The notes below the pieces were generated by a model. It saw nothing but the letters and a program-made list of their open reading frames with translations. It did not search any database and was not told where the DNA came from. DNA of 63,764 nt, counting the filler, from Reticulomyxa filosa (lineage: Eukaryota; Protista; Foraminifera), in assembly GCA_000512085.1 (NCBI GenBank). It is 13 parts of 13 records of this genome, joined end to end, with 100 filler letters (N's around TTAATTAATTAA, not from the genome) between each part and the next. Parts side by side here need not be neighbours in the genome. Positions count along the whole stretch, not along the records: positions 31,080 to 45,752 come from ASPP01007442.1; 12 more parts are not named here. One strand, written 5' to 3'. This document shows, in pieces, positions 31,080 to 45,852 of this stretch. How positions within the stretch are numbered: the stretch's first letter is position 1; each line of letters opens with the position of its first letter. The translations under genes and the position numbers were made by a program.

Positions 31080-31321
31080 CGGATACTTTGTCTGCTTCTG
31101 ACGGACATAAAGCGTAGCATTTATAACACCCTCGAAATGCTTCCTCATTGTAGTATTCACAATGTCTGCACTTCCAACCTTTTTGCTCTTTTGTTTGTGT
31201 GTGTGTGACTGCAATTTGTAGACGTCACTATTGACCTTGTTTTTGGAATAAAAGCAACAGTTAAATACTAACTGAATAACTCCCCTTCTTTTGTGTCTTC
31301 AATCGAATCATCTTTGTCCAT
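31080..31321 (-). CDS. 5' fragment of a RanBP2-type zinc-finger protein (frame missed by the ORF track)
   Basis: Manual translation gives GWKCRHCEYYNEEAFRGCYKCYA = W-x-C-x2-C-x3-N-x6-C-x2-C. Candidate first exon MDKDDSIEDTKEGELF starts at 31321. Confidence 0.65.
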
Positions 31322-32386
31322 TTTAAGCCTCTTATCTGTATAAAGGGTTTTTTTGAAAATGAAACTGCACAGTTCGGTTCAAAACCGAACCTGTGTTTGT
31401 AATCTTGTACGTTAGAGGAAATTTACTGTCCTTTGGAGAGCCAAAAGCAAATTTTTAAGTTTAAAATATTTTATCTCTATTTTTAAACATTTTTCAAATA
31501 CCTGTTTTTATTGAAAATTTTTTAAGTAAAATTGAGCAAAAAAAAGGATGAAAGTTCACGTCAATATCGTCTTATTGTGTTATTGGCTCAGGAATGCGTT
31601 TCCACATTATCAAGCATGCAAAACTGTTATGCATAAGTTAAGTATGTTGTTATGAAGTCTCGTCAATTCAAAATTTTTTTGTAAATTGTGAGAACTACCT
31701 ACACGTGCTCACCAAGTTTTTCCCCCTCTAAACCATTTATACGATACGTTCTACAGGCCAAACACAACCAAGTATTCTCAAACAATTGACAAAAAAAAAG
31801 TGAATGGAGTGTTGGTATTGTATAATTTTCTGAGATTTTTTCGATATTTTCAATTTAATTTTTTGGTCTCTTGCCGTCATAAACATTGATGTACAAAAGA
31901 AACTACGATGCAGCATTTTTTTTTTGGATCACAGCATTAACGAATAAAAAGAGAAGCGAACTAATTTGTTTAGCATTACTCTTTTCATTTTTTAAATAAA
32001 AATACAACAATAGCATATCTTTTTCAATGATCCAGAAACGATTAAGATTTCTTTTGCAAAAACAAAAGCTATGGGTTGCAAAGATTAAGAAAACTTGATA
32101 AACAATTTGAGATGTAGACAAGGTCAGACGTGCCTTGAAGAAAAAAAGGTGTTTCCGTTTACGTAGTTCTTTCTTCCTTCTCAACTTTTTTAGACGAACG
32201 TCTTTTCATTATTGACGCTTTTCACGAATCCTGCCAAAAAAGTAAGTAGATATTCTTGATTGTTGTTTGTTTTGGTCAATGCTGCCGTTGGTAGCAGCAA
32301 GTAGTTTGGTTTAGGCACTGGTTTTTGTTTCTCGTTGCCACAAAAAAACATGGGCAAACAAAACTAATGTCAACAGTCTCGGAAGT

Positions 32387-35300
32387 ATGGCCAGTGAATT
32401 TGGATCAAGCACAGATCTACTAAAGATCGAACAAGGCTAAATTAACGAAAAATAAAATATTTCCAAAAACCTAACACAATACATCTGCACTGTTCTTTCT
32501 TTAAAAAACTTTAAGTAAACGGGGGACACGTACGAACATGTATCAAAAAAAAAAAAAATGCAGGACTGGTAGTTTTAGCGGAAATAGATTTTGCTGAAAT
32601 TGATATGAAGGATGACAAATCATCCTTAGAGCTACAAAATGAGGTATTTATGAAACATGTTGACTTGAAACATTGCGTTTCTTTTTTGGTAAAGTGTGAC
32701 GTTCGAAAAGCAAACAAGTATGTGTGTGATATATTAACCACAAGGTGAAGCAAGAGCCAGTTCCAGTGGAAAAGGAAACCGAAAAGCCTGTGGAAAAGGA
32801 AATCGAAAAGCCTGTAGTAGAAAAGGAAATCGAAAAGCCTGTAGAAAAAGAAATCGAAAAGCCTGTGGAAGAGGTAAAGCATGAAATCGAACAAAACAAG
32901 TACACGAAGGAAATGAAGGCATTGACGAGATTGAGTGGCGACACCATTAGCGGAGAAGAATTGAGAAGACAACTCGAAGAAAGCAATGGCAATGTGTCAG
33001 CTGTAATTGAAAAGATCGTGTTTAAATTGATGAATCAACATGTATATTTTTATATATTTATGTAAACACAAAATCAAATTAATTAACATCACAAATAAAA
33101 AAAAATAAAAAAAAATAAATATAAATAAAAATAAATAAAAGATCGAAACTCAAGGTTTGGACAAAGAGAATAAAGTTAATAAATAAATACAAATTATTAT
33201 TATTATTATTATTATTATTACATATATAATACAAACATTATATTGGTAATAAAAAAAAAAAAGATTAAAGATATCGAAGAGATGGAGCCAGGTGAAAAAA
33301 GTAAGGAAAAATTGAAAAAAGAAGAGGAGGATGAAAAAGTTGGAGAAATAAAACCAGGAATTAATTTGCAAGGACATTGTGAAAATAACAAATGCTTGGC
33401 TTCGAAAGGAAGACTTCTTGTGTGGATTAATATTGGATTTGCTGAGATTTCATTTGTTTCGGACAAAAGCAATTTTGAGTGTCCAGATTGCAGAGAAAAA
33501 ACAGTGACATCAATTACCAAGGCCATGTTTTATAACTCGAATCATTCAATTCGTGCCAGGAATGATAACACAAGAGCTGTGGAAGATAATAATTATCAGT
33601 GCACATATACAATTATTTCTGGACTTTCCTATGAATTGAAAGCAAAAAAGATTAGACAGTTTGCGGAAAGTATTGAAGATTTGATAGATAGGAGTGAGCA
33701 AGCAATGAATAGTAAAGAATTAACTAATTTGGTTATGGAATTGCAAAAATATGATATTACTGTTATAAAACCACCCAATTTGAAAGGGAATGATCGATTA
33801 TTGGAAAAAATTCAAGCAGATTATGATGGTGATTTCAATCAAGTATTCGATATTGGAAGATTTACTATATTATGTGATAATCCAAACAAATTGCAAGCAG
33901 CAGTGGCAGTGATTAAGAAAGCAGATCAATTCAATCTAATTGTATCTGAAGATAAAGATTTTTTTAATAAACAATCCAAAACACATCATAGATTTCACAA
34001 TATTAAATTATATGTCCCAAAACATAAAGTTTATGTTGAAATGCAAGCAACATTAAAAAATTTTACAACGTTAGAGGGATATACCACAATTGAAAATCCA
34101 AAACTGAGTCATTCATTTTATGAACAAATTCGAGCATGGAAACCTAGTCCAGAAGAGGAAGAATTAAAACAAGCAAGTGATGAAACATTAATAAAAATTA
34201 ATGATATAATTTGTGAATGGATTGATACAAAAGAAATTAAAAAAATTGCTAATCGTTACAAACCACATTCAAAAATTGGAATATTAAAACCTCCACAATT
34301 AAAAGGAATATTTGAAAAAGATGTCAATCTTATGGATAATACTCCATTAAAATTATCTCAATTTTCATATGATCAACTTTGTACATTTAATCCTGAAAAA
34401 GAAAAAGGAAAAGCAATTCATGTAATTTTATTTGAATATTTTAGAAAATATATTATGAAAGAGATAAATCCGGCAAGTCGTGCTGATATTGCATCAATAT
34501 TAAAAGAATCAAGAAAAAAAGAATTAGAAGAAGATGCAGCAATATTTCAAGCACTTGAAACATATATTCCATTACAAGCAAATAATTATCCATTTACTGA
34601 TAATAATAATAATAATAATAATAATAATGCATATGATTGTTATCAATATATTATTGATTTATTAGAAAAAAAAGAAGAAAAATTAAGTGAAGAGGAAGAA
34701 GAAAAACAAATAAAAATAGAAGGAGAACAAAGTGTAATAATTTTACAAGGAAAATCAGGAGGAGGAAAAAGTTTTATTTTGTCGCATTTAGAACAATCTT
34801 TATGGGAAAAATATATAGACGGTGACTCCACATCATTAATTCCTGTTTATATTTCATTACCAAAGTATTATAATGAAATAAATGAAACACAAATCATTTC
34901 TCAAGCTTTACAAATGAAACAAATAAATAAAGATATAATTGAAATTATCCGTGAAAATATGTCATTTGTATTTATATTAGATGGCTTTGATGAAATTTTT
35001 GATAAATATAATAAATACAATAAAAATAATAGTGATAAATATTTTTGTGATAGATTTAATTTAAGTGAATGGAATGCAAAAATTATTGTTAGTTGTCGTA
35101 GTCATGTATTAAATGATTATGATATTAAACATATTTTAATTGGTGAAGATAATACAAAAATACCAATGATATATTTATGGCCTTTTTCAAAAATGCAAGT
35201 TTATGATTATATTGATAAATTTATTAAAATAAATAAAAAAAATTTAATTAATGATAATTCTAATTGGACAACACAGCAATATAAAGAAACATTAAAAAAT

Positions 35301-35720
35301 TATCCAAATTTATATAAAATGATAGAAGAACCATTTTTACTTAGAATGATATTGACTGTATTACCATCATTATCATATCAACATACCATAGGAACTAAAA
35401 TATCAAAAGCGCAAGTATATGAAGCATTTAATGAACAATGGGTCGATATTCATGTCAAAGATGTTCACAATAAATTAGCAGAGCTAAGAATTCAAACAAA
35501 TCCAAAAAAGATTAAATTCGCATTTCAACAATATTGTCAAGATTTAGGATTTGAAATGTTTATTCAAGGAAATCAAGTTGCAACAGAAAATGATTATAAT
35601 GAAATTGATAATATAAGTATAAGTATAAATACAAATATAAATACAAATAATATTACAGAAAATAAAATAGATATTGATGAAACTATAGAAGAAAAAATAG
35701 AAAGATATTTGGAGAAATAT

Positions 35721-35722
<2 letters not shown>
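32387..35722 (+). CDS. NACHT (STAND) NTPase with an N-terminal EKPVEKEI repeat/UBA-like region, Cys-rich segment and RelA/SpoT-like nucleotidyltransferase domain; C-terminus lost in an (AAT)n repeat
   Basis: Walker A GKSGGGKS (34749-34772), PVYISL, Walker B FVFILDGFDEI (~34965-34997), KIIVSCR and EPFLLRMI. Upstream: LKGNDRLLEKIQADYDGD..FDIGRFTI..KDFF..HHRFHNIKL..VEMQAT. Short 5' exons begin at ATG 32387. Confidence 0.8.
32765..32872 (+). repeat. Coding tandem repeat, ~24-nt unit (PVEKEIEK) x4
   Basis: gaaaaggaaatcgaaaagcctgt units in ORF 32745-33065. Confidence 0.85.
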
Positions 35723-35787
<65 letters not shown>

Positions 35788-35790
35788 TAA
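35722..35790 (+). repeat. (AAT)n microsatellite joining two unrelated reading frames
   Basis: About 22 AAT units; composition and coding frame change across it. Confidence 0.9.
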
Positions 35791-38544
35791 TGATTTGTAT
35801 GGAACAGATGAACAGACATTTAAGCAACAAAGTTTGGAGGAGGAAAATGTGTATGACAGCACGTATCCACAACAGCTGGTAAGGAAAGAATCGAATACGA
35901 TAAACAAAGACAATCATCAGAGTCCGCGTTATGAGCGATATCAAGAACAATTTAACACAACGAACTTCACAGTAAAAATGACAGCCGTAGATCCAATAGC
36001 ATCTCCACAAAGTGCGTGCACTCCCTCCCCTCCCCTTCTTGCATTATAATGTATACGTATTTTTTTAAAAAAATGTTTTGCGTTGACTTAAAAAAAAAAA
36101 AAAAAAAAAGGAGCAAAGACAAAAGGAAAAAGTAATTGGTAGTGGAGCTGACATGAATTGCGGGGGAATATTTGGAGAAGATGAAGAGTGGATAAAAAGA
36201 AAACACAAAAAACAGATAGACGAATATAAAGAAGCATTGGAAGCACAAGTGAACCATCAAAAAAAAAAAAGATGGAGGCACGAATGAAAGAACAAGGTAA
36301 ATTTGGAGGGAGGTAGGGAGGAGAGGAGAACACTTAATTGGTTTGTATATACCTATTTATACGTCAACTTGTTCTTTTTGTGAAATAACTCTGAGCTAAT
36401 AGAAGAGGAAAGAAGACTGGAGGAAAAACTGCAGAGAGAAAGGGAAGAATTGAAAAGAAAATTCGAGCGTGAAGCTGCAGGTGAGAATGACAAGCCTAAA
36501 CAAGTAACTGAAGATTACGACATGCCAAAGGTACCATCGCAAAAGAAAACGGAGTGGGCACTACTGAAAATGTAGTGTCCCAACTTTTCGATGAAATGAC
36601 CTTTTCCTCAAAACCAAACTCTTTGTATGCATTTATGTCTTTGATATCCATTTTTTGTTTGCATTAAGGACAAGCAACAACCATTAAACAAATGTATCAA
36701 CAAAAAAATAAACCATGCAATGTCTGCCTGTTCAAGTCCAAGCACATGTGTCAAGTCATCTAACGATATACAGGTATCTAAAGAATAACTTCTCTTTGAC
36801 TTATTTCTAACTACAAAATATTTTGTTCATTTCGATATATATATATATATATAATATATATATATATATGTATATAATGCGGAAAAAACAAGAATGATCA
36901 GCTTAGAGATCAAAAACCAAGAAAAAGGGAAAATGCAAAAATTGTTGAAGAAAATGACACTGGGGAGCATCTGTCCTGGCTTGAAAAATTTCAACGGAGG
37001 AGTGACCCTGACAACGTAGAGATAAAAAGGAGGTGGAAGACTTGAAACAAATGATCCAACAGCTCCAAAAGATACAACAAGTGAAAGCAATGGAGTCTCG
37101 TCAAAGTGTTCAAAGTGAATTGCATAATCAATTGATGCAATTAAAGGAAATGATTGTAACATTGAAACACAACGCGGCCACCAATGATACGCAGCCTGTA
37201 GTGGCAAAGGCAGCTACAAGAGACACAAATACGACACAACACCACTCTCTCATGACCGATGCACCTGCCTCTGAACAAATTCAAAATGGCCTGAACACAC
37301 AATGCGAAACACAGAGCCTCCAAGAAAAACACAAATGCACCTATGGATCTATTTCAGAGCATAAATCCGCAAGATTTGGAGTACTTCAAACAGATTCTAT
37401 CTGTTGATATAACAGAAGGAGAGACAAAGAAAACATTGCAGACGATAGCCAGCTCCCAACCCAAACTTGCACGATTCTCGTTCCTGAAGAGGATTTAGCC
37501 GCTACTCCAAATGTCCCAATGTTTGCTATTCTTTTTTTTTATTTTTTTGATATATGTTAATTTTGCTTTGAAAAAAAATTCCTCAATCTAAAACACGGAC
37601 TGCCTTGTTTGGCATTCACAATATACTAAGCAAGTTTTTTTTTCTTTTCAATTTTGCTCGCCCCTGTTCAAAAACTGAAAAAACAAAAAAAAATAAAAAG
37701 TGCCCCAGATCGACCAGATACTGCGTTTACATTATTGGAAGAAGATGAGGCACTAATGAGGGAAATGAATGATACAGCACAAATAGAACAGTGGAAATAT
37801 TTGAGATATCAACACCATAACCGAACGAGTTTCTTAATGCTGTCCAACTTTATTCTTAATTTATTTATTTGTTGCTAAGTTTTTCAAGCAAATTATAAAA
37901 AAAAATTGGTTGTATGCAATGTGTGGCCAATGGTACAAAGAAGAGGCCGCAGATGCAAAAACAGGACTCAGTTCTTCTCATTTCCTTGTCGAAAAGAGCA
38001 TTGATTCAAAGAGTTCATTATTGTTACTGTCAGATAAAATGGATGACTTGTTAGTAACAGAGAGCAACCAAAAAGAACAGAGTCCTAACACTCCAAAAAA
38101 TTTTACATTGCCGTCTTCAGAGCTAATTCGAAAGGATAGCAAAAAAAAGCTATTTTCATTGGATGAAAAGGGCGCAGATCCGGATATATTCCATCTATTT
38201 CAACTGAACAAAAAAAGATTATCGTATTTGCAGGCTACTGATATTTGCATTAATTCAGAGGTAATGCTACGTACAGATTTTGGAGCTGACTGACTCTTTT
38301 TTTTTTTAGTTCTGCTTTGAAAAAAAAATGGATAACTCTTGTTTGACAATAGGCCAAAGATACCCTTGAACCAACTTTGGAGGGGATCCGAAGGCTATTG
38401 GAACATGAGGCTAGTACACACGCTCAGCTAATTGACAATGAACCAGTAAACACCGAAAGGCCGCAAACATGTGCCTCTACTGTTTCATTGCAGTCTTTAT
38501 CCGTTCCTGCTCTAAGAAATACACAAATATCCTTTTTGGAATAA
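35790..38544 (+). CDS. Multi-exon coiled-coil protein (weak CCDC66/CSPP1-like segment), 5' end unresolved
   Basis: Exons include YKEALEAQV, EEERRLEEKLQREREELKRKFERE, ORFs 37033-37407 and 37910-38293, and a last exon ending QISFLE* at 38544. Confidence 0.5.
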
Positions 38545-38878
38545 TCAAATAACCTGTGTAACGTACTTGTCACAGAAAAATGCACATTCTTGTTAATTTA
38601 CCTCTTTTGTGTTGATGACACACTTCTTCAATTACATTACTTTTATTACTCCCTTTTTTAGTGCATGCAAAGGAGCAAAAAAAAAAAAAAGGTAAAAATA
38701 AAATAGCATGTTTTTTTTTTCTGGAAGATGCATTGTATCGGTTTCATGAATCTCTTTAAATGCATCCTGGTAAATAGTTTTCGAAAATACAACAGAAAAC
38801 AAGGACGTGTAAAACATTATCTCTAGAGCCACTTTGCAAATTGAGGTTCTGCTGCAGGAGAAATTAAAAAAAAAACTA

Positions 38879-40171
38879 ATGGCAACCGACATGAGTTTGA
38901 ATCATAATTTTGGGTTTTTTATCAGTATAGCATGCACAGCTCTTTGTTTCTCGGTCTTGTTTTTGCAATACTGTTCGTATAAAAAATATTGGCAAATCTC
39001 GAAGCACTCAGGGGACGAACGTAAGCAAGCACGTTTGATGCTGTTCATATTGTACGGGATTTATGTGAGTAACAATATCTGCTGTATATTGAACTTACTT
39101 ATGTGGATAGCATTTCCAAATGCGAGTATTTGTCACCATGGGCCAGTAGTGATTGAAATTTGTTATTGCATCGGAAAATTTTTCACGTATTTGTTTTATA
39201 CTCGACGGGCTCGTCTCACTCAAAACAATACGTATTTGTGCTTACCAGCATATTGTTTTGAAAGAGTGATACCCAGTTTTTTGACGCTGTTTGTGCTATC
39301 ATTTATTTTGGTCTTGGTATTCAATGGAAAGAATGATGGCTCCGTCAGTTATAATGGAAATAATGTGTCACTTTATGTGTATTGTCTCAATCACACATGC
39401 AAAAAAAAAAAAAAAAAAAAGAGGGGATAGCAACACCCAACAAAAAAAAAAAAAATGAACAAATAATCAAATAATAACAATATGTGACGATGATGGCAAC
39501 AACAACAATAAACCCAAGTTGAAAATGACAAGATATGGTTGACACATCGATACTGCGAAGTGAAGGTGACAGGCAATTGGTACTGGATTAAGGCTGGAGG
39601 GCTTATTGAATTAGGATTTTTTATGTTTTTTTCGATCATATTTGCATACCCATTACACAAATTTTTGAAGCATTCAAAATATGGTTTTGCAGCTGCACCA
39701 ACATACACTTCAGTGATGTCAACAACCAATCACAATGACAACACATCAAATCAGCAACGGCAAACTACGCTATTGTCTTGCGAAACCACTATATCTCTAC
39801 GTAAAGAATTCAAAAAAGTGTTACGCTACAATTTGACTTTATCTGTGGCCGCATCTTTGACTTCTTTCTTAACTCTATGGTTTTGGCCAAGTCCGCGAAA
39901 ACATGATCAAAGGTGGTTCATTGCACTGATTGATTACTGTGTTGCTGTCCTCACTACTTTTGCAATGTCAGGCAGAAATCGAAAATTTTTACATTATTAC
40001 TTTTCCTCTTGTCGTTGCCATCAATTAACTGACTACTGTTATTGCTCTATGTGCTTTCGTAATACCAATGACAATGATCCTTTGAGAAATCGTCAGTTAA
40101 TGGTTCGAGCTGACTCTTGCGATCTTCAACCTAATTTTCATCACATCAAAAACGTGGCTGCTGTTGAGTGA
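38879..40171 (+). CDS. Seven-transmembrane (GPCR-like) membrane protein, 2 exons
   Basis: Four hydrophobic helices in ORF 38834-39430 and three in ORF 39539-40171; extracellular Cys residues; basic C-tail. Confidence 0.6.
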
Positions 40172-40580
40172 TTTGTTTTGTTTTATTTCACACAATGATT
40201 TTAGAGGACATTTTGTTGTATATTAAATAAACAAATATGCATTTGTGTTCTCAAAAAAAAACACAAAAGCGAATTACATTTATTTTTGCAAACTACTTTT
40301 TGTTCAGTAAATGTTCGATTTAAGAGTGTTAGCTACTTAATTTGCTTTTATTCATTATTTTTATAAGTGGAAGAAATAAAAATCATTTCAAAGTGTACGC
40401 AGATACAACTCTATGTTGAAAGATCATATATCACAATTTTAAATATTTTTTGTTTTGACTCCAAGTAATAAATAACCTTAAAAGAACAGAACAAAAAGCT
40501 CTTTTGAAACTAAAAAAAAAGGAAACGCAATTATTTTTCAAATTGAAAACATTAATAAACCGAGCATTCACTCTCAAAAA

Positions 40581-42308
40581 ATGTCCTATACAAGGATTTG
40601 CGTAACAATCGATTCAAAGGAATACCAACTTGAGTTTATATCCTTAACAATTGAAACCTTGAGACAGCAAGTCATCGAAGCAAGCAACAGCGGTCAACAA
40701 GGAAGCGAATTGATAAAAATAACAGACGACAACGCATGCGATATTGAAACATCCCAACAGCTTCAACAAGCAGTTGCAGACGGCAGACTTCGTTTTATTG
40801 CGTGTTTCCAGCCAAGTTTATATCTGTTTTTCCTTCTTACGAAGAATGTGCATAATCCATAATCTTAAAAAAAAAAAAAAAAAAAAGAAAAGATAGTAAG
40901 CAAGTCGGATATCGATCAGTTGTTCGAAAGAGGAGATATACAACCCGTATCGATTAATTATTGCGATAATTATTATTTGCCCCCAAATTTGCAGTATCAA
41001 CCAATGGATGATAAAAAGAATGACATACAAATGGAAACTAATGGCAATGTAGAAACGTTGGATTTTAAGAAACATTGGAACAGAGGTTGGAGGAAAGCAA
41101 ATGTGGAAGCAGTCAAAATGGTTAATACAATGCTGAATAAAAAGGAACAAGGATTGATTGTTGTGGCCAAAAATCTGTTTGAATGGCAAAAGATAGCAAA
41201 TCCAGATTTAATCAAAACTTATCATAATTCCTTTTTATTCCGCTTGTTGGTGAATAACGACAAAGTGAATAAAAAACAATTTCGAGAATACTGTGTATAT
41301 ACAATGAAAGACAAGTTGCTACATTTGGATGGACTAGATGTTGATGGCAATGTGTACGCAATAAACTGTGAAATCCAATCCCAAGAAAATATCAATGTCA
41401 CAACACAGTTCTATGTTACAAAAGACACCATCATAGATCAAAAGTTAAAAAAATTAATTTCACCGATTCAATGGAATACCAAAATACACTATGAAATTCC
41501 ACTGAAAATTCAAGAAATTGAAGACAAAGAAGAGAATTGTTCAGGGAAACAACTTTTTGATGATGCAATTGTTCATTTACAAAATTATTTGCAACTTTCT
41601 ATTGAGATGTTCGGAGTCAATAATCATTATGTTGCCATTGCATACAATCTGCTTGCCATCGCATACTATCATAAAGGACAAAATAGCAAGGCGATAGAAT
41701 ATAATGAAAAAGCATTGAAACTTTTATTACATATTTTTGGGATGAAATGTGTTTTTGTTGCTCAATTGTATGAGAATTTAGGAGTTACTTATAAAAACAA
41801 TGGGCGGCATGACAAGGCGATCGAATGTTATATGAATTCATTAAATATTGGATTGGAACTTTTTGGAGAAAATAATACTGATGTTGCTGCATCATATAAC
41901 AGTTTAGGGCATGTTTATCATAATAAAGGACATTTTGACGATGCGATTCAACTTTATGAAAAGGCGTTGAAAATTCGATTGGATATTTTTGGAAATAATC
42001 ATGATGATGTTGCTAACTCTTACAACAATATAGGAAATGCTTTTTACAGGAAAGAACAGAATGAAAAGGCAATCGAATATTACGAAAAAGCTTTGACAAT
42101 CAGAAAGACAATATTTGGAAATTCGAGGCAATCAGTTGGTGATTCATATTGGAATTTGGGACTAGCATTTAAGCAAAAAGGAGAAAAGAAAGTGGCATGC
42201 AAATATTATAATGAAGCTTGGAAACTATACAGCGTGTCATTGGGAGAATGGCACGTTACAACATTGGGAGCAAAGGAAAAAGTCAAAGAATTGTACGAAG
42301 ATCTGTGA
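40581..42308 (+). CDS. TPR-repeat protein with a small PB1/Ubl-like N-terminal exon
   Basis: Kinesin-light-chain-type 42-aa TPRs (DVAASYNSLGHVYHNKGHFDDAIQLYEKALKIRLDIFG). First exon 40581-40816. Confidence 0.88.
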
Positions 42309-43767
42309 GACTTTTGATTGCTCAAGCAAAATAATTAAAAGTATTTTTAAATTTTATCAAAAGTAATTAAAACAAGTAATTCCTTAAATAACATGAGATC
42401 AAAACAATGTCAAATTTGCAATTGGAAAAAAATTGTGCATAAGATATTTAATCATTAGAAGTGTTTTGTTCTCCTAATTAAAACTAACAATAAATGCTGT
42501 CATTAAGATAATCATCTTTCTCAACAAAATGATAAGCTATGGAAAAAAAAAACGTGATTACTACAACTGGAGTTATCCTAATGACAACCATAATGTATCA
42601 ACTCATTCTTCTGACCAGAGTAGTCACGGATGGCAAGCACCATATTACTTTCGTATTATTATTACATTTTTCTTTATTTTTGTCACTATTTTGTTGACGA
42701 TGCTAAAAAAACCAAAGATTAGATGGTACAACAACACTCAAAACAAATTTATTAAAAAATAATACGCTTGTAGATATTGTTCATTATTCCCTCAAAACAT
42801 GATGTAAATTTTTTGCTTAATATTATTTTTGTCGTCGAAACTCGTTTCAAAGAGACAAGGTGATATACTTAAAAAATATCCTAATAAATAATAATCTTTG
42901 AAATCTCTCCGTCTAAAGTCATCAAATCAACAAATAGTTGAAGTCATAATGTACTACAAGTCACTATTAACTTTACTAATCGCAGCAATTGATAGTGTCG
43001 TTGCTTCGTATTCACGAAAAAGACAACGCAAATGAAAATTTTACGTCCGTTTAAATACAATAATGAAAAATAATCTATTACAACCTTTGCAAATAAGTTC
43101 TACTCTGAAGCAATTCGTTTTATTGTTTACCAACAGAAAACTAATGTTTTATTAGTTACAATAAAATAAACATTGTGTTTACTTGAAAGAATATTATGAT
43201 GTAATATGCATTTCTTGCATCAACTTCCAATTATTGTTATGCGAAAAAGCGGAGGCAGCAAAATGTTACACAAACAATAGTTGTGTTTTGATATCGTCAC
43301 AAGAGTTAACTCATGTTGTGTTATAACACATCATATGACTTCCTCTTCATCCAATTTCAGCTTGATCCACGCTCGTATATACCTAATAATAACCTCATTG
43401 ATATACATCTAAAAAATTTAATCTATTTACTTTATAACTAATTAAATTTATTCTACTTTTTTTAACAACGTCTAAAAAAAATTAAAGAAAGATTATAATA
43501 TATTTTTATTTTCAAAAAAACTTGATTATAAAAAAATTCAGCATATAGTACATTAAGCTTCTGATAGCAAAATTATGACAAAATCTTTGACATATATTCA
43601 AGAATTAGAAAACACTTCTCTTCGATCTTTTAAACAGAACGTCACTAGTTTTTGTTTTTGAACACCAACAACAAGATAAAGTACGCAACGATTTCGTTGA
43701 CCCTGCTTTTTTGAGTCTTGTGATATTATAACGGCTCGTAAATTTAACTGTAATACGAGTGATAATA

Positions 43768-45697
43768 ATGTGGAATTTAGGAAGTCAGAATCCAATTGTG
43801 ATATTGGCATGTTTCGTTATAGTGTTCAGTAGTTTCTTACTGGCACCTTGGGTTTTGTATATGCTGTTCCGGCACAAAAGGAATTACGTAGATGAACCGG
43901 AGCCAAGCCGTTGGAAGCGGTTATTAGAAATGCGAACAAAACAAAAGCAGCTCCTCTGGCCGTATATATCGATAAGCATGGTACTGGCGATAGGTGTGCA
44001 CATAAGCATAACAAGTGCAGTGTATCTATACTACGAGACGATATTTCCAAGAGAGCTAGCGAGCAAAGAAAGAAAGGAAGGGGACAAGTTGCGATTGGAC
44101 CTGTTGATCTGTATGTACCTTCCCATATATTCGCTGTCATTATGTCAACTGTTACTGCGGATGTATATACTAAGTAAGTCATTGTATGCTTCGATTAGAA
44201 GACGTGTTATTGCAAGCAAAATCGCAAGGAGCAAATGGTTATCCTTTTGGTTTGAGCGTCTGACCATTCCATCATTTCTGGCAATTCTAGTTGCTTCCAT
44301 TCTGATCCCATTAGCTGTATCCTTGTAAATCTTTTCTTTTTTTTTTTTTTTTTTTTGTATGTGTTATGTGTTCCGTCGTCTGTACAATAAAAAAAATGAG
44401 GTATACGTAAGACTAAAAGTGGGTGATCACAAATTTGATTGGTTGTCTTTTTTTTTAAAAAAAAACAACCACAAAAATTGGGTGGAAAAAAAGAGGGGTA
44501 AAGCACAAGGTGATGTCAAATGGGAACGGAAATGAAGCAATGGTCTCCGAATACAAGTTGGTGATAACGTTATGGTACTTATTTCCATTGGTTATACTCA
44601 GTATAATATTGAGTTCGACATGGAGGAGAATAGGAAAATGGCTTGATATTGCAAATGGTATTGCGATCGATGTGCGCTCAAAGTTTTATTATGAGCTCAT
44701 TTCGAGTGAGTGCATATTCCTTTGCACCCTCGTTTTGTTTAGCGTATTCCTTACTTGGATTGCTATTTTTGCCATGTCATTTTTTTTCGCAGATCCTTCG
44801 TCATCATCGTCACCACCATCCACAGTGCTATCTGTGATTTGGTGTATTCTAATATTTCTGCAAAATGTAGTTCTTGGTTCGTCTGTATGGTACTCGCTGC
44901 AATGGATTCCTTTTCTTACCCTTCAAAAGCTACGTCGCTTTCGGTCTCCTCACCGCCTTTTGTCGTCCATGACCTTGCCTATGGCTGCTTCTCTTCCTGA
45001 CGTTCACGCCGGCTGTGTTCCCACACCTTCCGCTCAGTCTTCCCTTTCACAAAAACCAATGCTATTAATTGTAAAATCACGTTCGTTTGTTTGCTTGCTT
45101 TTGTCTGCTTGTTTAACTTGATTGATCAATTCCAACAGAGAGCTTTTTTTTTTTTACTTTGTCATTTGTATTTCCCCCCCCCCCCTTCGTTTCTCTCGTA
45201 TACGTGCGCATGTAATACGCAACAGAAAGTGAAGACGATGTTGAAATAAAGTACGTGGGGGATGCAAACGCCCACATGACTGGGATAAACGAAGAGAAGG
45301 AAGAGGAGGATAATAGCAACATCGAATATATCAATGACGATGATGGCAGCGACAATGGCGGCAATGTCGCTAACAATAATGGCGATAATCATGCTAATAA
45401 TAATAATAATAATAATGATAATGTTGATAACCATGGCAACAATAATGATAACAGTAATAATAATAATAATAATAATAATAGTAATGACAATAATAATGAC
45501 AGTAACAATAATGATAACAGTGAGAAAAAGAATAATGAAAACAATGGAAAATTATTGCATCGACGGAAATCGTGGTCATCTCCCACTAAATCTATTTCGT
45601 TTCACGATAATCCCTTGAGCACTGGAGCATGTGATAGTAATACCTGTTCACAAGAGAAGGCCTCTGTTAATGGACACGTCATTTTCAAAATGCCAAA
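43768..45697 (+). CDS. Multi-pass (7TM-like) membrane protein with Asn-rich cytoplasmic tail, 3'-truncated
   Basis: Hydrophobic ORFs 43759-44328 and 44510-45121, then poly-Asn exon 45255-45697. Confidence 0.6.
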
Positions 45698-45852
45698 GTT
45701 ATTCCTTTCTCCTTTTTTTTTTTTTTTTTCAAAAAAAAAAAAAAAAAAAAAANNNNNNNNNNNNNNNNNNNNNNNNNNNNNNNNNNNNNNNNNNNNTTAA
45801 TTAATTAANNNNNNNNNNNNNNNNNNNNNNNNNNNNNNNNNNNNNNNNNNNN

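Follow-up and report, generated by a model that had tools for sequence, protein, structure and literature searches.

Twelve classes of N-terminal domain have been described for fungal NOD-like receptors (NLRs), and RelA_SpoT is among them (Dyrka et al., 2014; PMC4986451). Proteins of the layout RELA_SPOT-NACHT-WD40 are listed there in Gaeumannomyces graminis, with the suggestion of a ppGpp-based manipulation of bacteria (PMC4986451). In a survey of the Sordariales, 17 RelA_SpoT NLRs were counted, 14 of them (82%) of the T-NACHT type, and later surveys have retained RelA_SpoT as a canonical but rare NLR class (bioRxiv 10.1101/2024.11.26.625400). The gene described here lies on the plus strand of a window of Reticulomyxa filosa DNA, that is, a stretch of 63,764 nucleotides made of thirteen parts of assembly GCA_000512085.1 joined end to end with filler. 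The region analysed, positions 31080-45752 of the whole stretch, comes from ASPP01007442.1 and is eukaryotic DNA rich in AT (GC 22-39%). Its product is an NLR-like protein in which a RelA/SpoT-type domain very probably serves as the effector.

Because RelA_SpoT-NACHT-WD40 proteins have been on fungal lists since 2014, the kind is already known in eukaryotes by annotation. The initial annotation of this DNA, made from sequence alone, did not recognise a characterised eukaryotic system, and this can be kept only in part: the architecture is catalogued in fungal NLRs, whereas no account of the biochemistry of any NLR with a RelA/SpoT-homologue (RSH) domain was found in the literature, nor any publication linking Reticulomyxa with NACHT or NLRs. 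Like the fungal RelA_SpoT NLRs, the R. filosa proteins have the order RSH effector, NACHT and, in full-length paralogues, WD40, and the effector is predicted to be enzymatic. Unlike them, they belong to Rhizaria, add UBA/CUE-like and Cys-rich beta modules, form a family of more than 50 copies as against the 17 proteins of the Sordariales survey, and have a divergent RSH domain that scores at or under the Pfam cut-off. The 72 profile matches (E<=0.001) described below included no named fungal protein, and what the R. filosa proteins can be said to share with the fungal ones is the architecture.

The closest characterised bacterial protein is Tas1/Apk1 of Pseudomonas aeruginosa (PDB 6ox6), the top match of the R. 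filosa domain in sequence and in structure. The motifs K-x3-R-x3-K, D-x-(G/A)-R and E-x-Q and a C-terminal H..YE..R helix are common to both. PAAR- and MuF-fused members of this group (Tas1/Apk1, Apk2) make pApp, ppApp and pppApp and deplete ATP (PMC10083569). Tas1, however, is delivered by PAAR and the type VI secretion system and checked by an immunity protein, whereas the R. filosa domain is carried on a NACHT switch in a eukaryote; in addition, the G-Y of Tas1 is H-H in the R. filosa copy. RelQ/SAS1, RelP/SAS2 and the synthetase domain of Rel/RelA/SpoT have the same fold and catalytic core, but their sequence similarity is far weaker, and they are (p)ppGpp makers, bacterial or plastid stress regulators without a link to STAND NTPases. 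A third comparison is CapRel (PDB 7ztb), a fused toxSAS-antitoxin phage-defence protein in which, as in R. filosa, an RSH-fold toxin is placed under a covalently attached sensor. CapRel differs in being bacterial, in having its active site occluded by a small C-terminal domain rather than controlled by NACHT/WD40, and in pyrophosphorylating tRNA, and it gave no sequence-level match in PDB searches at E<=1.

An RSH-type domain ahead of NACHT

Sequence motifs and a structure model together indicate that the protein is very probably NLR-like, with an RSH-type and apparently catalytic effector domain joined to NACHT. The open reading frame (ORF) listed at 33243-35882 (plus strand, 879 aa) contains the following features on which this assignment depends, with residues in ORF numbering:

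33660..34277, plus strand: RSH synthetase-fold domain, Tas1-like (ORF aa 140-345)
33783..33860, plus strand: predicted donor-ATP/Mg2+ motifs K181-x3-R185-x3-K189 and D203-x-G205-R206, from paralogue conservation and alignment with Tas1
33954..33998, plus strand: predicted acceptor-site segment K238-D-F-F...T-H248-H249-R250-F-H252, at the position of the canonical KDY...GYxSxH
34038..34046, plus strand: predicted catalytic E266-M-Q268, on the canonical E-x-Q strand
34734..35126, plus strand: NACHT NTPase domain (aa 498-628; Pfam NACHT)
34749-34772, plus strand: Walker A, GKSGGGKS, intact
34971-34994, plus strand: Walker B, FILDGFDE, intact

The domain is recognised by several independent comparisons. 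Scanned alone, the 180-aa segment aa 157-336 matched PF04607 (RelA_SpoT) with E 1.2e-5 over profile positions 4-89 of 113. The same profile was matched at E<0.01 by 39 of 42 paralogous RSH domains (alignment A1, mean identity 78%), with a best value of 1e-6, and paralogue P0001 reached 30.2 bits. When the whole protein was compared with all PDB sequences by phmmer, the single weak match was to Tas1, on the K...R...K/D..R motif, and Tas1 was also the sole PDB match of the A1 family profile (E 0.026). An AlphaFold2 model of the domain built from A1 had a predicted local distance difference test score (pLDDT) of 84 and a predicted template modelling score (pTM) of 0.77. Foldseek placed Tas1 at the top for this model (E 1.7e-6, TM 0.55-0.58), followed by an exported Streptomyces small alarmone synthetase, M. 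tuberculosis Rel, RelP, RelQ and CapRel. In VIA-align, Tas1 was matched with Z 12.2 over 170 residues (root-mean-square deviation 3.5), RelQ with Z 11.3, CapRel with Z 10.3 over 180 residues, the longest stretch matched, and the long Rel/RelA/SpoT enzymes with Z 8-11; Cid1, cGAS and Pol lambda came near Z 7.

Because RSH synthetases dominate both structural searches and other nucleotidyltransferases reach only about Z 7, the fold call is specific to RSH. A generic nucleotidyltransferase of the cGAS, Cid1 or Pol beta-like kind was considered and rejected, its Z of about 7 standing against 10-12 for RSH proteins and RSH-specific motifs being present. The RelA/SpoT fold that the initial annotation had claimed, and had named as one of two points on which its proposal would stand or fall, is therefore confirmed at the level of the predicted model, with Tas1, RelQ and CapRel all clearly above the generic enzymes. 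The motifs it had quoted are likewise all present at or near the positions assigned to them: Cys pairs at 33357-33380 and 33480-33491, LKGNDRLLEKIQADYDGD at 33780-33833, FDIGRFTILC at 33846-33875, EDKDFF at 33948-33965, KTHHRFHNIKLY at 33978-34013 and VYVEMQATL at 34029-34055. No second RSH copy was found in 31080-45752, a scan with NCBIfam gave no relevant match, and no PADLOC defence model was matched.

The residues expected to bind the donor and to catalyse transfer are kept throughout the family. K181, D203, G205 and R206 occur in all 42 paralogues and R185 and K189 in 38-39 of them, while E266 and Q268 occur in 41, the lone exception being a deletion; the catalytic D and ExQ first picked out in this copy thus prove to be conserved among its paralogues. 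In alignment A2, which includes divergent relatives (21 sequences, average identity 31%), the invariant columns are K181, R185, K189, Y194, D203, R206, E266 and Q268, and E266 and Q268 are invariant in alignment A5 as well. The donor motif aligns with IKSRERAMQKI...DLAR of Tas1, and the catalytic residues align with the same residues of Tas1, YwaC and YjbM, the E-x-Q being EIQ in all three. Mean identity to the window copy is 75% in the RSH domain, compared with 63% in NACHT, 58% in the Cys-rich domain and 56% in the linker. The RSH domain is more conserved than any other part of the protein, which favours a working enzyme over a relic, and, from its conserved residues, it is apparently an active pyrophosphokinase.

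The acceptor side is different. At the position of H-H-R-F in the window copy, relatives have G-Y-R-D, the segment aligning with KDRF...GYRD of the relatives and with GYSGVN of Tas1; the replacement of GY by HH noted from the start was accordingly placed at the right residues. Across the 42 paralogues, position 249 is occupied by His in 34 cases, by Tyr in seven and by Asp in one. Since the relatives show G-Y-R-D at this point and seven of the 42 paralogues have Tyr249, the RSH alignment is sound and it is the acceptor pocket that is altered. The change bears on the choice of acceptor, and not on the fold or the donor site.

The NACHT domain was matched by Pfam with E 9.6e-9 and 35.7 bits, against a cut-off of 26.7. 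Among paralogues, the Walker A Lys is kept in 43 of 43 and the Walker B D-G-F-D-E in 40-43 of 43. The domain had been described as intact and as following its effector; its score above the cut-off and both Walker motifs in place bear out the first point, and the position of the RSH domain, N-terminal of NACHT, the second.

Kinship to Tas1 and the proposed reaction

Relatives outside the foraminifer were sought by an exhaustive profile search that covered 1.84 billion representatives at E<=0.001. Of the 72 proteins recovered, about 46 are R. filosa-type sequences and fragments, and the remainder have E values of 2e-9 to 8e-4. They include toxin-type fusions, among which RSH domains of bacteria and phages are joined to an extracellular contractile injection system (eCIS) core (P0090, P0104) or to MuF/SPP1-gp7 (P0110), and another to DUF4781 (P0112), as well as a protein of Guillardia theta (P0097). 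Metagenomic relatives have an immune-style layout, Ank-RSH-NACHT in P0096 and RSH-TPR_12 in P0087 and P0113, and through these three it can be said that RSH-effector STAND or TPR proteins exist beyond fungi and R. filosa. The genes of P0096 and P0087 are at L002 2745-6257 and L003 508-2025, respectively; a word search started from P0096 returned only P0096 itself. P0090, a bacterial-looking protein of 3127 aa, combines the eCIS core with a tandem pair of RSH-like domains and, at its C-terminus, a calpain protease, and by its domain content looks like a multi-warhead contractile-injection cargo toxin.

When the R. filosa family was compared by hhalign with the outside relatives alone, the two were joined with a probability of 99.7% (E 1.8e-26, 150 columns). 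The outside relatives alone matched Tas1 at 1.3e-24, and the best (p)ppGpp synthetase, YwaC, at 5.5e-10. Because of this link, and because the match of the relatives to Tas1 exceeds that to YwaC, the family falls within the Tas1/Apk-like wing of the RSH superfamily. The likeness to toxic small alarmone synthetases, on which the initial annotation had remarked, holds in that the nearest characterised relative is the toxin Tas1. In a small RSH tree, the R. filosa clade was monophyletic (100/99) on a long stem; its sister grouping with NACHT/TPR-linked sequences was weakly supported (74/79), and the tree, which contains long branches, resolved only the monophyly of R. filosa. No delivery module (PAAR, MuF, eCIS) or cognate immunity protein was found in the ORF or its neighbours, and the domain, fused to NACHT and lacking a delivery module, was for this reason not classed among secreted toxins.

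What is established about STAND/NLR proteins and about Tas1 allows a sequence of events to be proposed. In full-length members, binding of a ligand by the WD40 part would lead to oligomerisation of NACHT, and this would switch on the N-terminal RSH domain. Once active, the domain would use ATP to pyrophosphorylate the 3'-OH of an acceptor, which by kinship to Tas1 would most likely be an adenine nucleotide. With (p)ppApp made and ATP drained, the affected cytoplasm would be shut down, growth-arrested or killed. By analogy with Tas1, (p)ppApp as the specific product, accompanied by an ATP drain, is a tentative assignment, possible rather than probable. The wider proposal is somewhat more doubtful, and on balance we think it unlikely to hold in full: that a Tas1/Apk-type adenosine 3'-pyrophosphokinase is the executioner of an expanded eukaryotic NLR family, converting ATP/ADP into (p)ppApp on receptor activation and collapsing the energy charge in part of a syncytial cell, and that the family arose separately from the fungal RelA_SpoT NLRs, out of a bacterial polymorphic-toxin domain.

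Several observations weigh against a Tas1-type enzyme acting as the effector of this protein. The PF04607 score of the window copy is 26.0 bits, 1 bit under the gathering score of 27. The paralogue alignment given to AlphaFold2 is shallow in diversity (78% mean identity), and residues 105-110 of the model (ORF aa 244-249, the loop that ends in the acceptor-site H248-H249) have pLDDT <50. The Z values of Tas1 (12.2) and RelQ (11.3) fall inside the tie margin. The canonical G-Y, which provides the acceptor base-stacking Tyr, is H248-H249 in the window copy, and acceptor specificity may therefore differ from that of Tas1. Finally, the window copy is without a WD40 sensor and ends in a microsatellite, and may be non-functional or mis-assembled.

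Two other products come into consideration. The RSH domain might be a (p)ppGpp or mixed alarmone synthetase, whose product would be a diffusible signal directed against intracellular or ingested bacteria, or a second messenger, without depletion of ATP. R. filosa feeds on bacteria, and RelQ, RelP and Rel, with Z 8-11, are among the structural matches of the model as well. The R. filosa family together with its relatives matches YwaC and YjbM at 1e-10 to 1e-7, and the manipulation of bacteria is an idea already proposed for the fungal RelA_SpoT NLRs (Dyrka et al.; PMC4986451). Tas1, however, is much closer in sequence (1e-24 vs 5e-10 for the relatives) and is the sole PDB match of the family, and the guanine-stacking Tyr is His in most copies, so that a (p)ppGpp-type product appears distinctly unlikely. 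Slightly less likely still is a tRNA 3'-CCA pyrophosphokinase like CapRel, FaRel2 and PhRel2, with which a fired NLR would block translation. An H-H in place of G-Y would be compatible with a non-nucleotide acceptor, CapRel is matched over the longest stretch of the model (the 180 residues at Z 10.3), and CapRel is itself a fused sensor-toxin immune protein; against this, CapRel has no sequence match in the PDB at E<=1, no PADLOC model was matched, and Tas1 is consistently the top match.

Enzymatic-effector NLRs, for example the TIR NADases, connect the immune systems of bacteria, fungi, plants and animals. New features of the R. filosa proteins are their lineage (Rhizaria), the large size of the family, the additional N-terminal modules and a kinship specifically to (p)ppApp toxins. 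The RelA_SpoT-NACHT layout is now extended to Rhizaria, a supergroup in which innate immunity is essentially unexplored. A large family with a strongly conserved catalytic core and kinship to ATP-depleting toxins provides a concrete and testable hypothesis for the whole class of RelA_SpoT NLRs; if it is true, immunity or allorecognition based on (p)ppApp would be seen outside bacteria for the first time. R. filosa forms a fusing, multinucleate network, and for this reason we consider a parallel with fungal heterokaryon incompatibility worth keeping in mind.

The paralogue family and the state of the window copy

A word-based search with aa 40-480 returned 53 proteins, all from R. filosa, with 45-75% identity and annotated as 'NACHT domain-containing' or hypothetical. 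The closest paralogue, P0002, is 72% identical over aa 20-794. At the protein level the paralogues differ by 25-50%, a divergence at which saturation of synonymous sites is to be expected. In full-length paralogues there are 10-14 WD40 repeats (about 10 in P0002, 14 in P0054), and at locus L001 a pentapeptide+WD40 ORF directly follows the NACHT part. By these sequence similarities the gene belongs to a large, lineage-specific, NLR-like STAND family of more than 50 copies, and the count of paralogues and of their C-terminal repeats that had been recommended at the outset thus gave both a large number and WD40 repeats in the full-length members. The predicted layout of the family is UBA/CUE-like, Cys-rich beta, RSH and NACHT, then pentapeptide and WD40 in full-length members.

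Some individual members depart from this layout in their sequence or their annotation. In P0001 (RFI_08856), the Cys-rich+RSH module occurs twice in tandem (aa 26-391 and 391-1023), with one NACHT after it. The public annotation of P0011 (L001 446-3519, 3693-5864) calls the pentapeptide+WD40 part a separate gene of 723 aa, 174 bases downstream, and reads through the upstream intron as coding. As P0011 is annotated in this way, many of the 'short' family members may be split gene models.

The remaining parts of the gene in the window are:

32745..33041, plus strand: upstream coding exon, in which a K/E/P-rich repeat is followed by a short UBA/CUE-like helical segment (about 32868-33041)
33042..33263, plus strand: probable intron, GT...AG, A/T-rich, its 3' end poly-A followed by AG
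33264..35882, plus strand: main exon of the NLR-like gene (mechanical ORF start 33243; stop codon 35880-35882)
33348..33680, plus strand: Cys-rich all-beta domain (ORF aa 36-146); its four conserved Cys form the pattern C-x4-C...C-P-x-C
35127..35594, plus strand: post-NACHT helical region, common to paralogues, with family homology stopping at about 35594 (BLASTP, tblastn)
35595..35882, plus strand: tail of low complexity without homology to the family, containing an (ATA/AAT)n run at about 35723-35790, then the stop

The gene had at first been taken to be the ORF at 33243-35882 on the plus strand. That ORF stands, but the extent of the gene was too short by the upstream exon at 32745-33041, which is common to paralogues: by tblastn, 15 of them match 32814-33071 with E down to 1e-15. 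The exon is flanked by splice signals, AG before 32745 and GT at 33042-33043, and paralogue locus L001 has a matching junction, at which coding resumes past poly-A + AG after '...LMNQ'. From these signals we infer that 33042-33263 is an intron. The upstream and main exons were searched separately, each by reference.

At its other end, the gene lacks the sensor of its full-length paralogues. With paralogue C-termini as queries, no WD40 or pentapeptide coding sequence was found in 31080-45752, even at E 10, and neither the window gene nor sequence continuing downstream contains WD40, TPR or LRR repeats. A downstream sensor exon was considered in the TPR_12 ORF at 40920-42308 and rejected, since this ORF, a member of a different R. 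filosa TPR family, is 5 kb off with unrelated ORFs in between. The term 'receptor' used in the initial annotation is therefore apt for the family, whose paralogues carry WD40, but this gene is without a C-terminal repeat sensor. The window copy may have arisen by truncation of a paralogue, exist naturally as a short form or reflect a break in the assembly; in functional terms it would be either a sensor-less variant, constitutive or partner-dependent, or a decaying truncated copy.

The latter possibility leads to a further explanation, that this locus holds a truncated paralogue that is dead or dying, or a microsatellite assembly artefact, or that its RSH domain is a non-catalytic scaffold or decoy. 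Homology ends at about 35594 and is followed by low complexity, (ATA)n and a stop; the next 10 kb are free of WD40, while at L001 a WD40 part follows at once; and the protein of this copy is absent from the searched protein collection. On the other side, the 2.6-kb ORF is unbroken although stops are frequent in the AT-rich genome, this copy has kept every catalytic and Walker residue, and RSH as the most conserved domain of the family speaks against a scaffold. We give this explanation only a small chance.

The (ATA/AAT)n microsatellite at 35723-35790 encodes about 20 Ile in the ORF frame and poly-Asn in another frame, which stays open as far as 36049; the C-terminus would be altered by a true frameshift or by a frame error of one base at 35723-35790.

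Accessory modules and neighbouring genes

The repeat of the upstream exon is a tandem K/E/P-rich peptide, EKPVEKEIEKPV..., that is common to many paralogues. The UBA/CUE label for this exon is weak, with E 0.009 for Pfam CUE and E 0.4 for the USP25 UBA-like domain.

In the Cys-rich domain, the four Cys are kept in >=90% of 39 sequences (alignment A3) and likely form a Zn site. Its AlphaFold2 model is all-beta (pLDDT 90). The domain had no match in Pfam or among PDB sequences, and Foldseek against the PDB gave none at E<=0.001; the best Z in a VIA-wide comparison was 6.0, within noise. Look-alikes were found in the ESM Atlas with TM 0.70-0.74, these being predicted structures in eukaryotic clusters, and the modelled fold may represent an undescribed eukaryotic domain. 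The look-alikes come from rotifer, sponge, ciliate and Mucoromycota, and some are fused to ubiquitin, RING or ADP-ribosyltransferase domains.

Further along the region, the ORF at 40920-42308 has an unassigned N-terminal part of about 230 aa followed by kinesin-light-chain-type TPR_12 repeats. Its matches are R. filosa paralogues only, at <=50% identity, and belong to a very large TPR family, several members of which are fused to a caspase (Peptidase_C14) domain. The ORFs at 38834-40171 and 43759-45121, which contain hydrophobic stretches and match nothing in Pfam, have the look of multi-pass membrane proteins and are located between and after the NLR-like and TPR genes.

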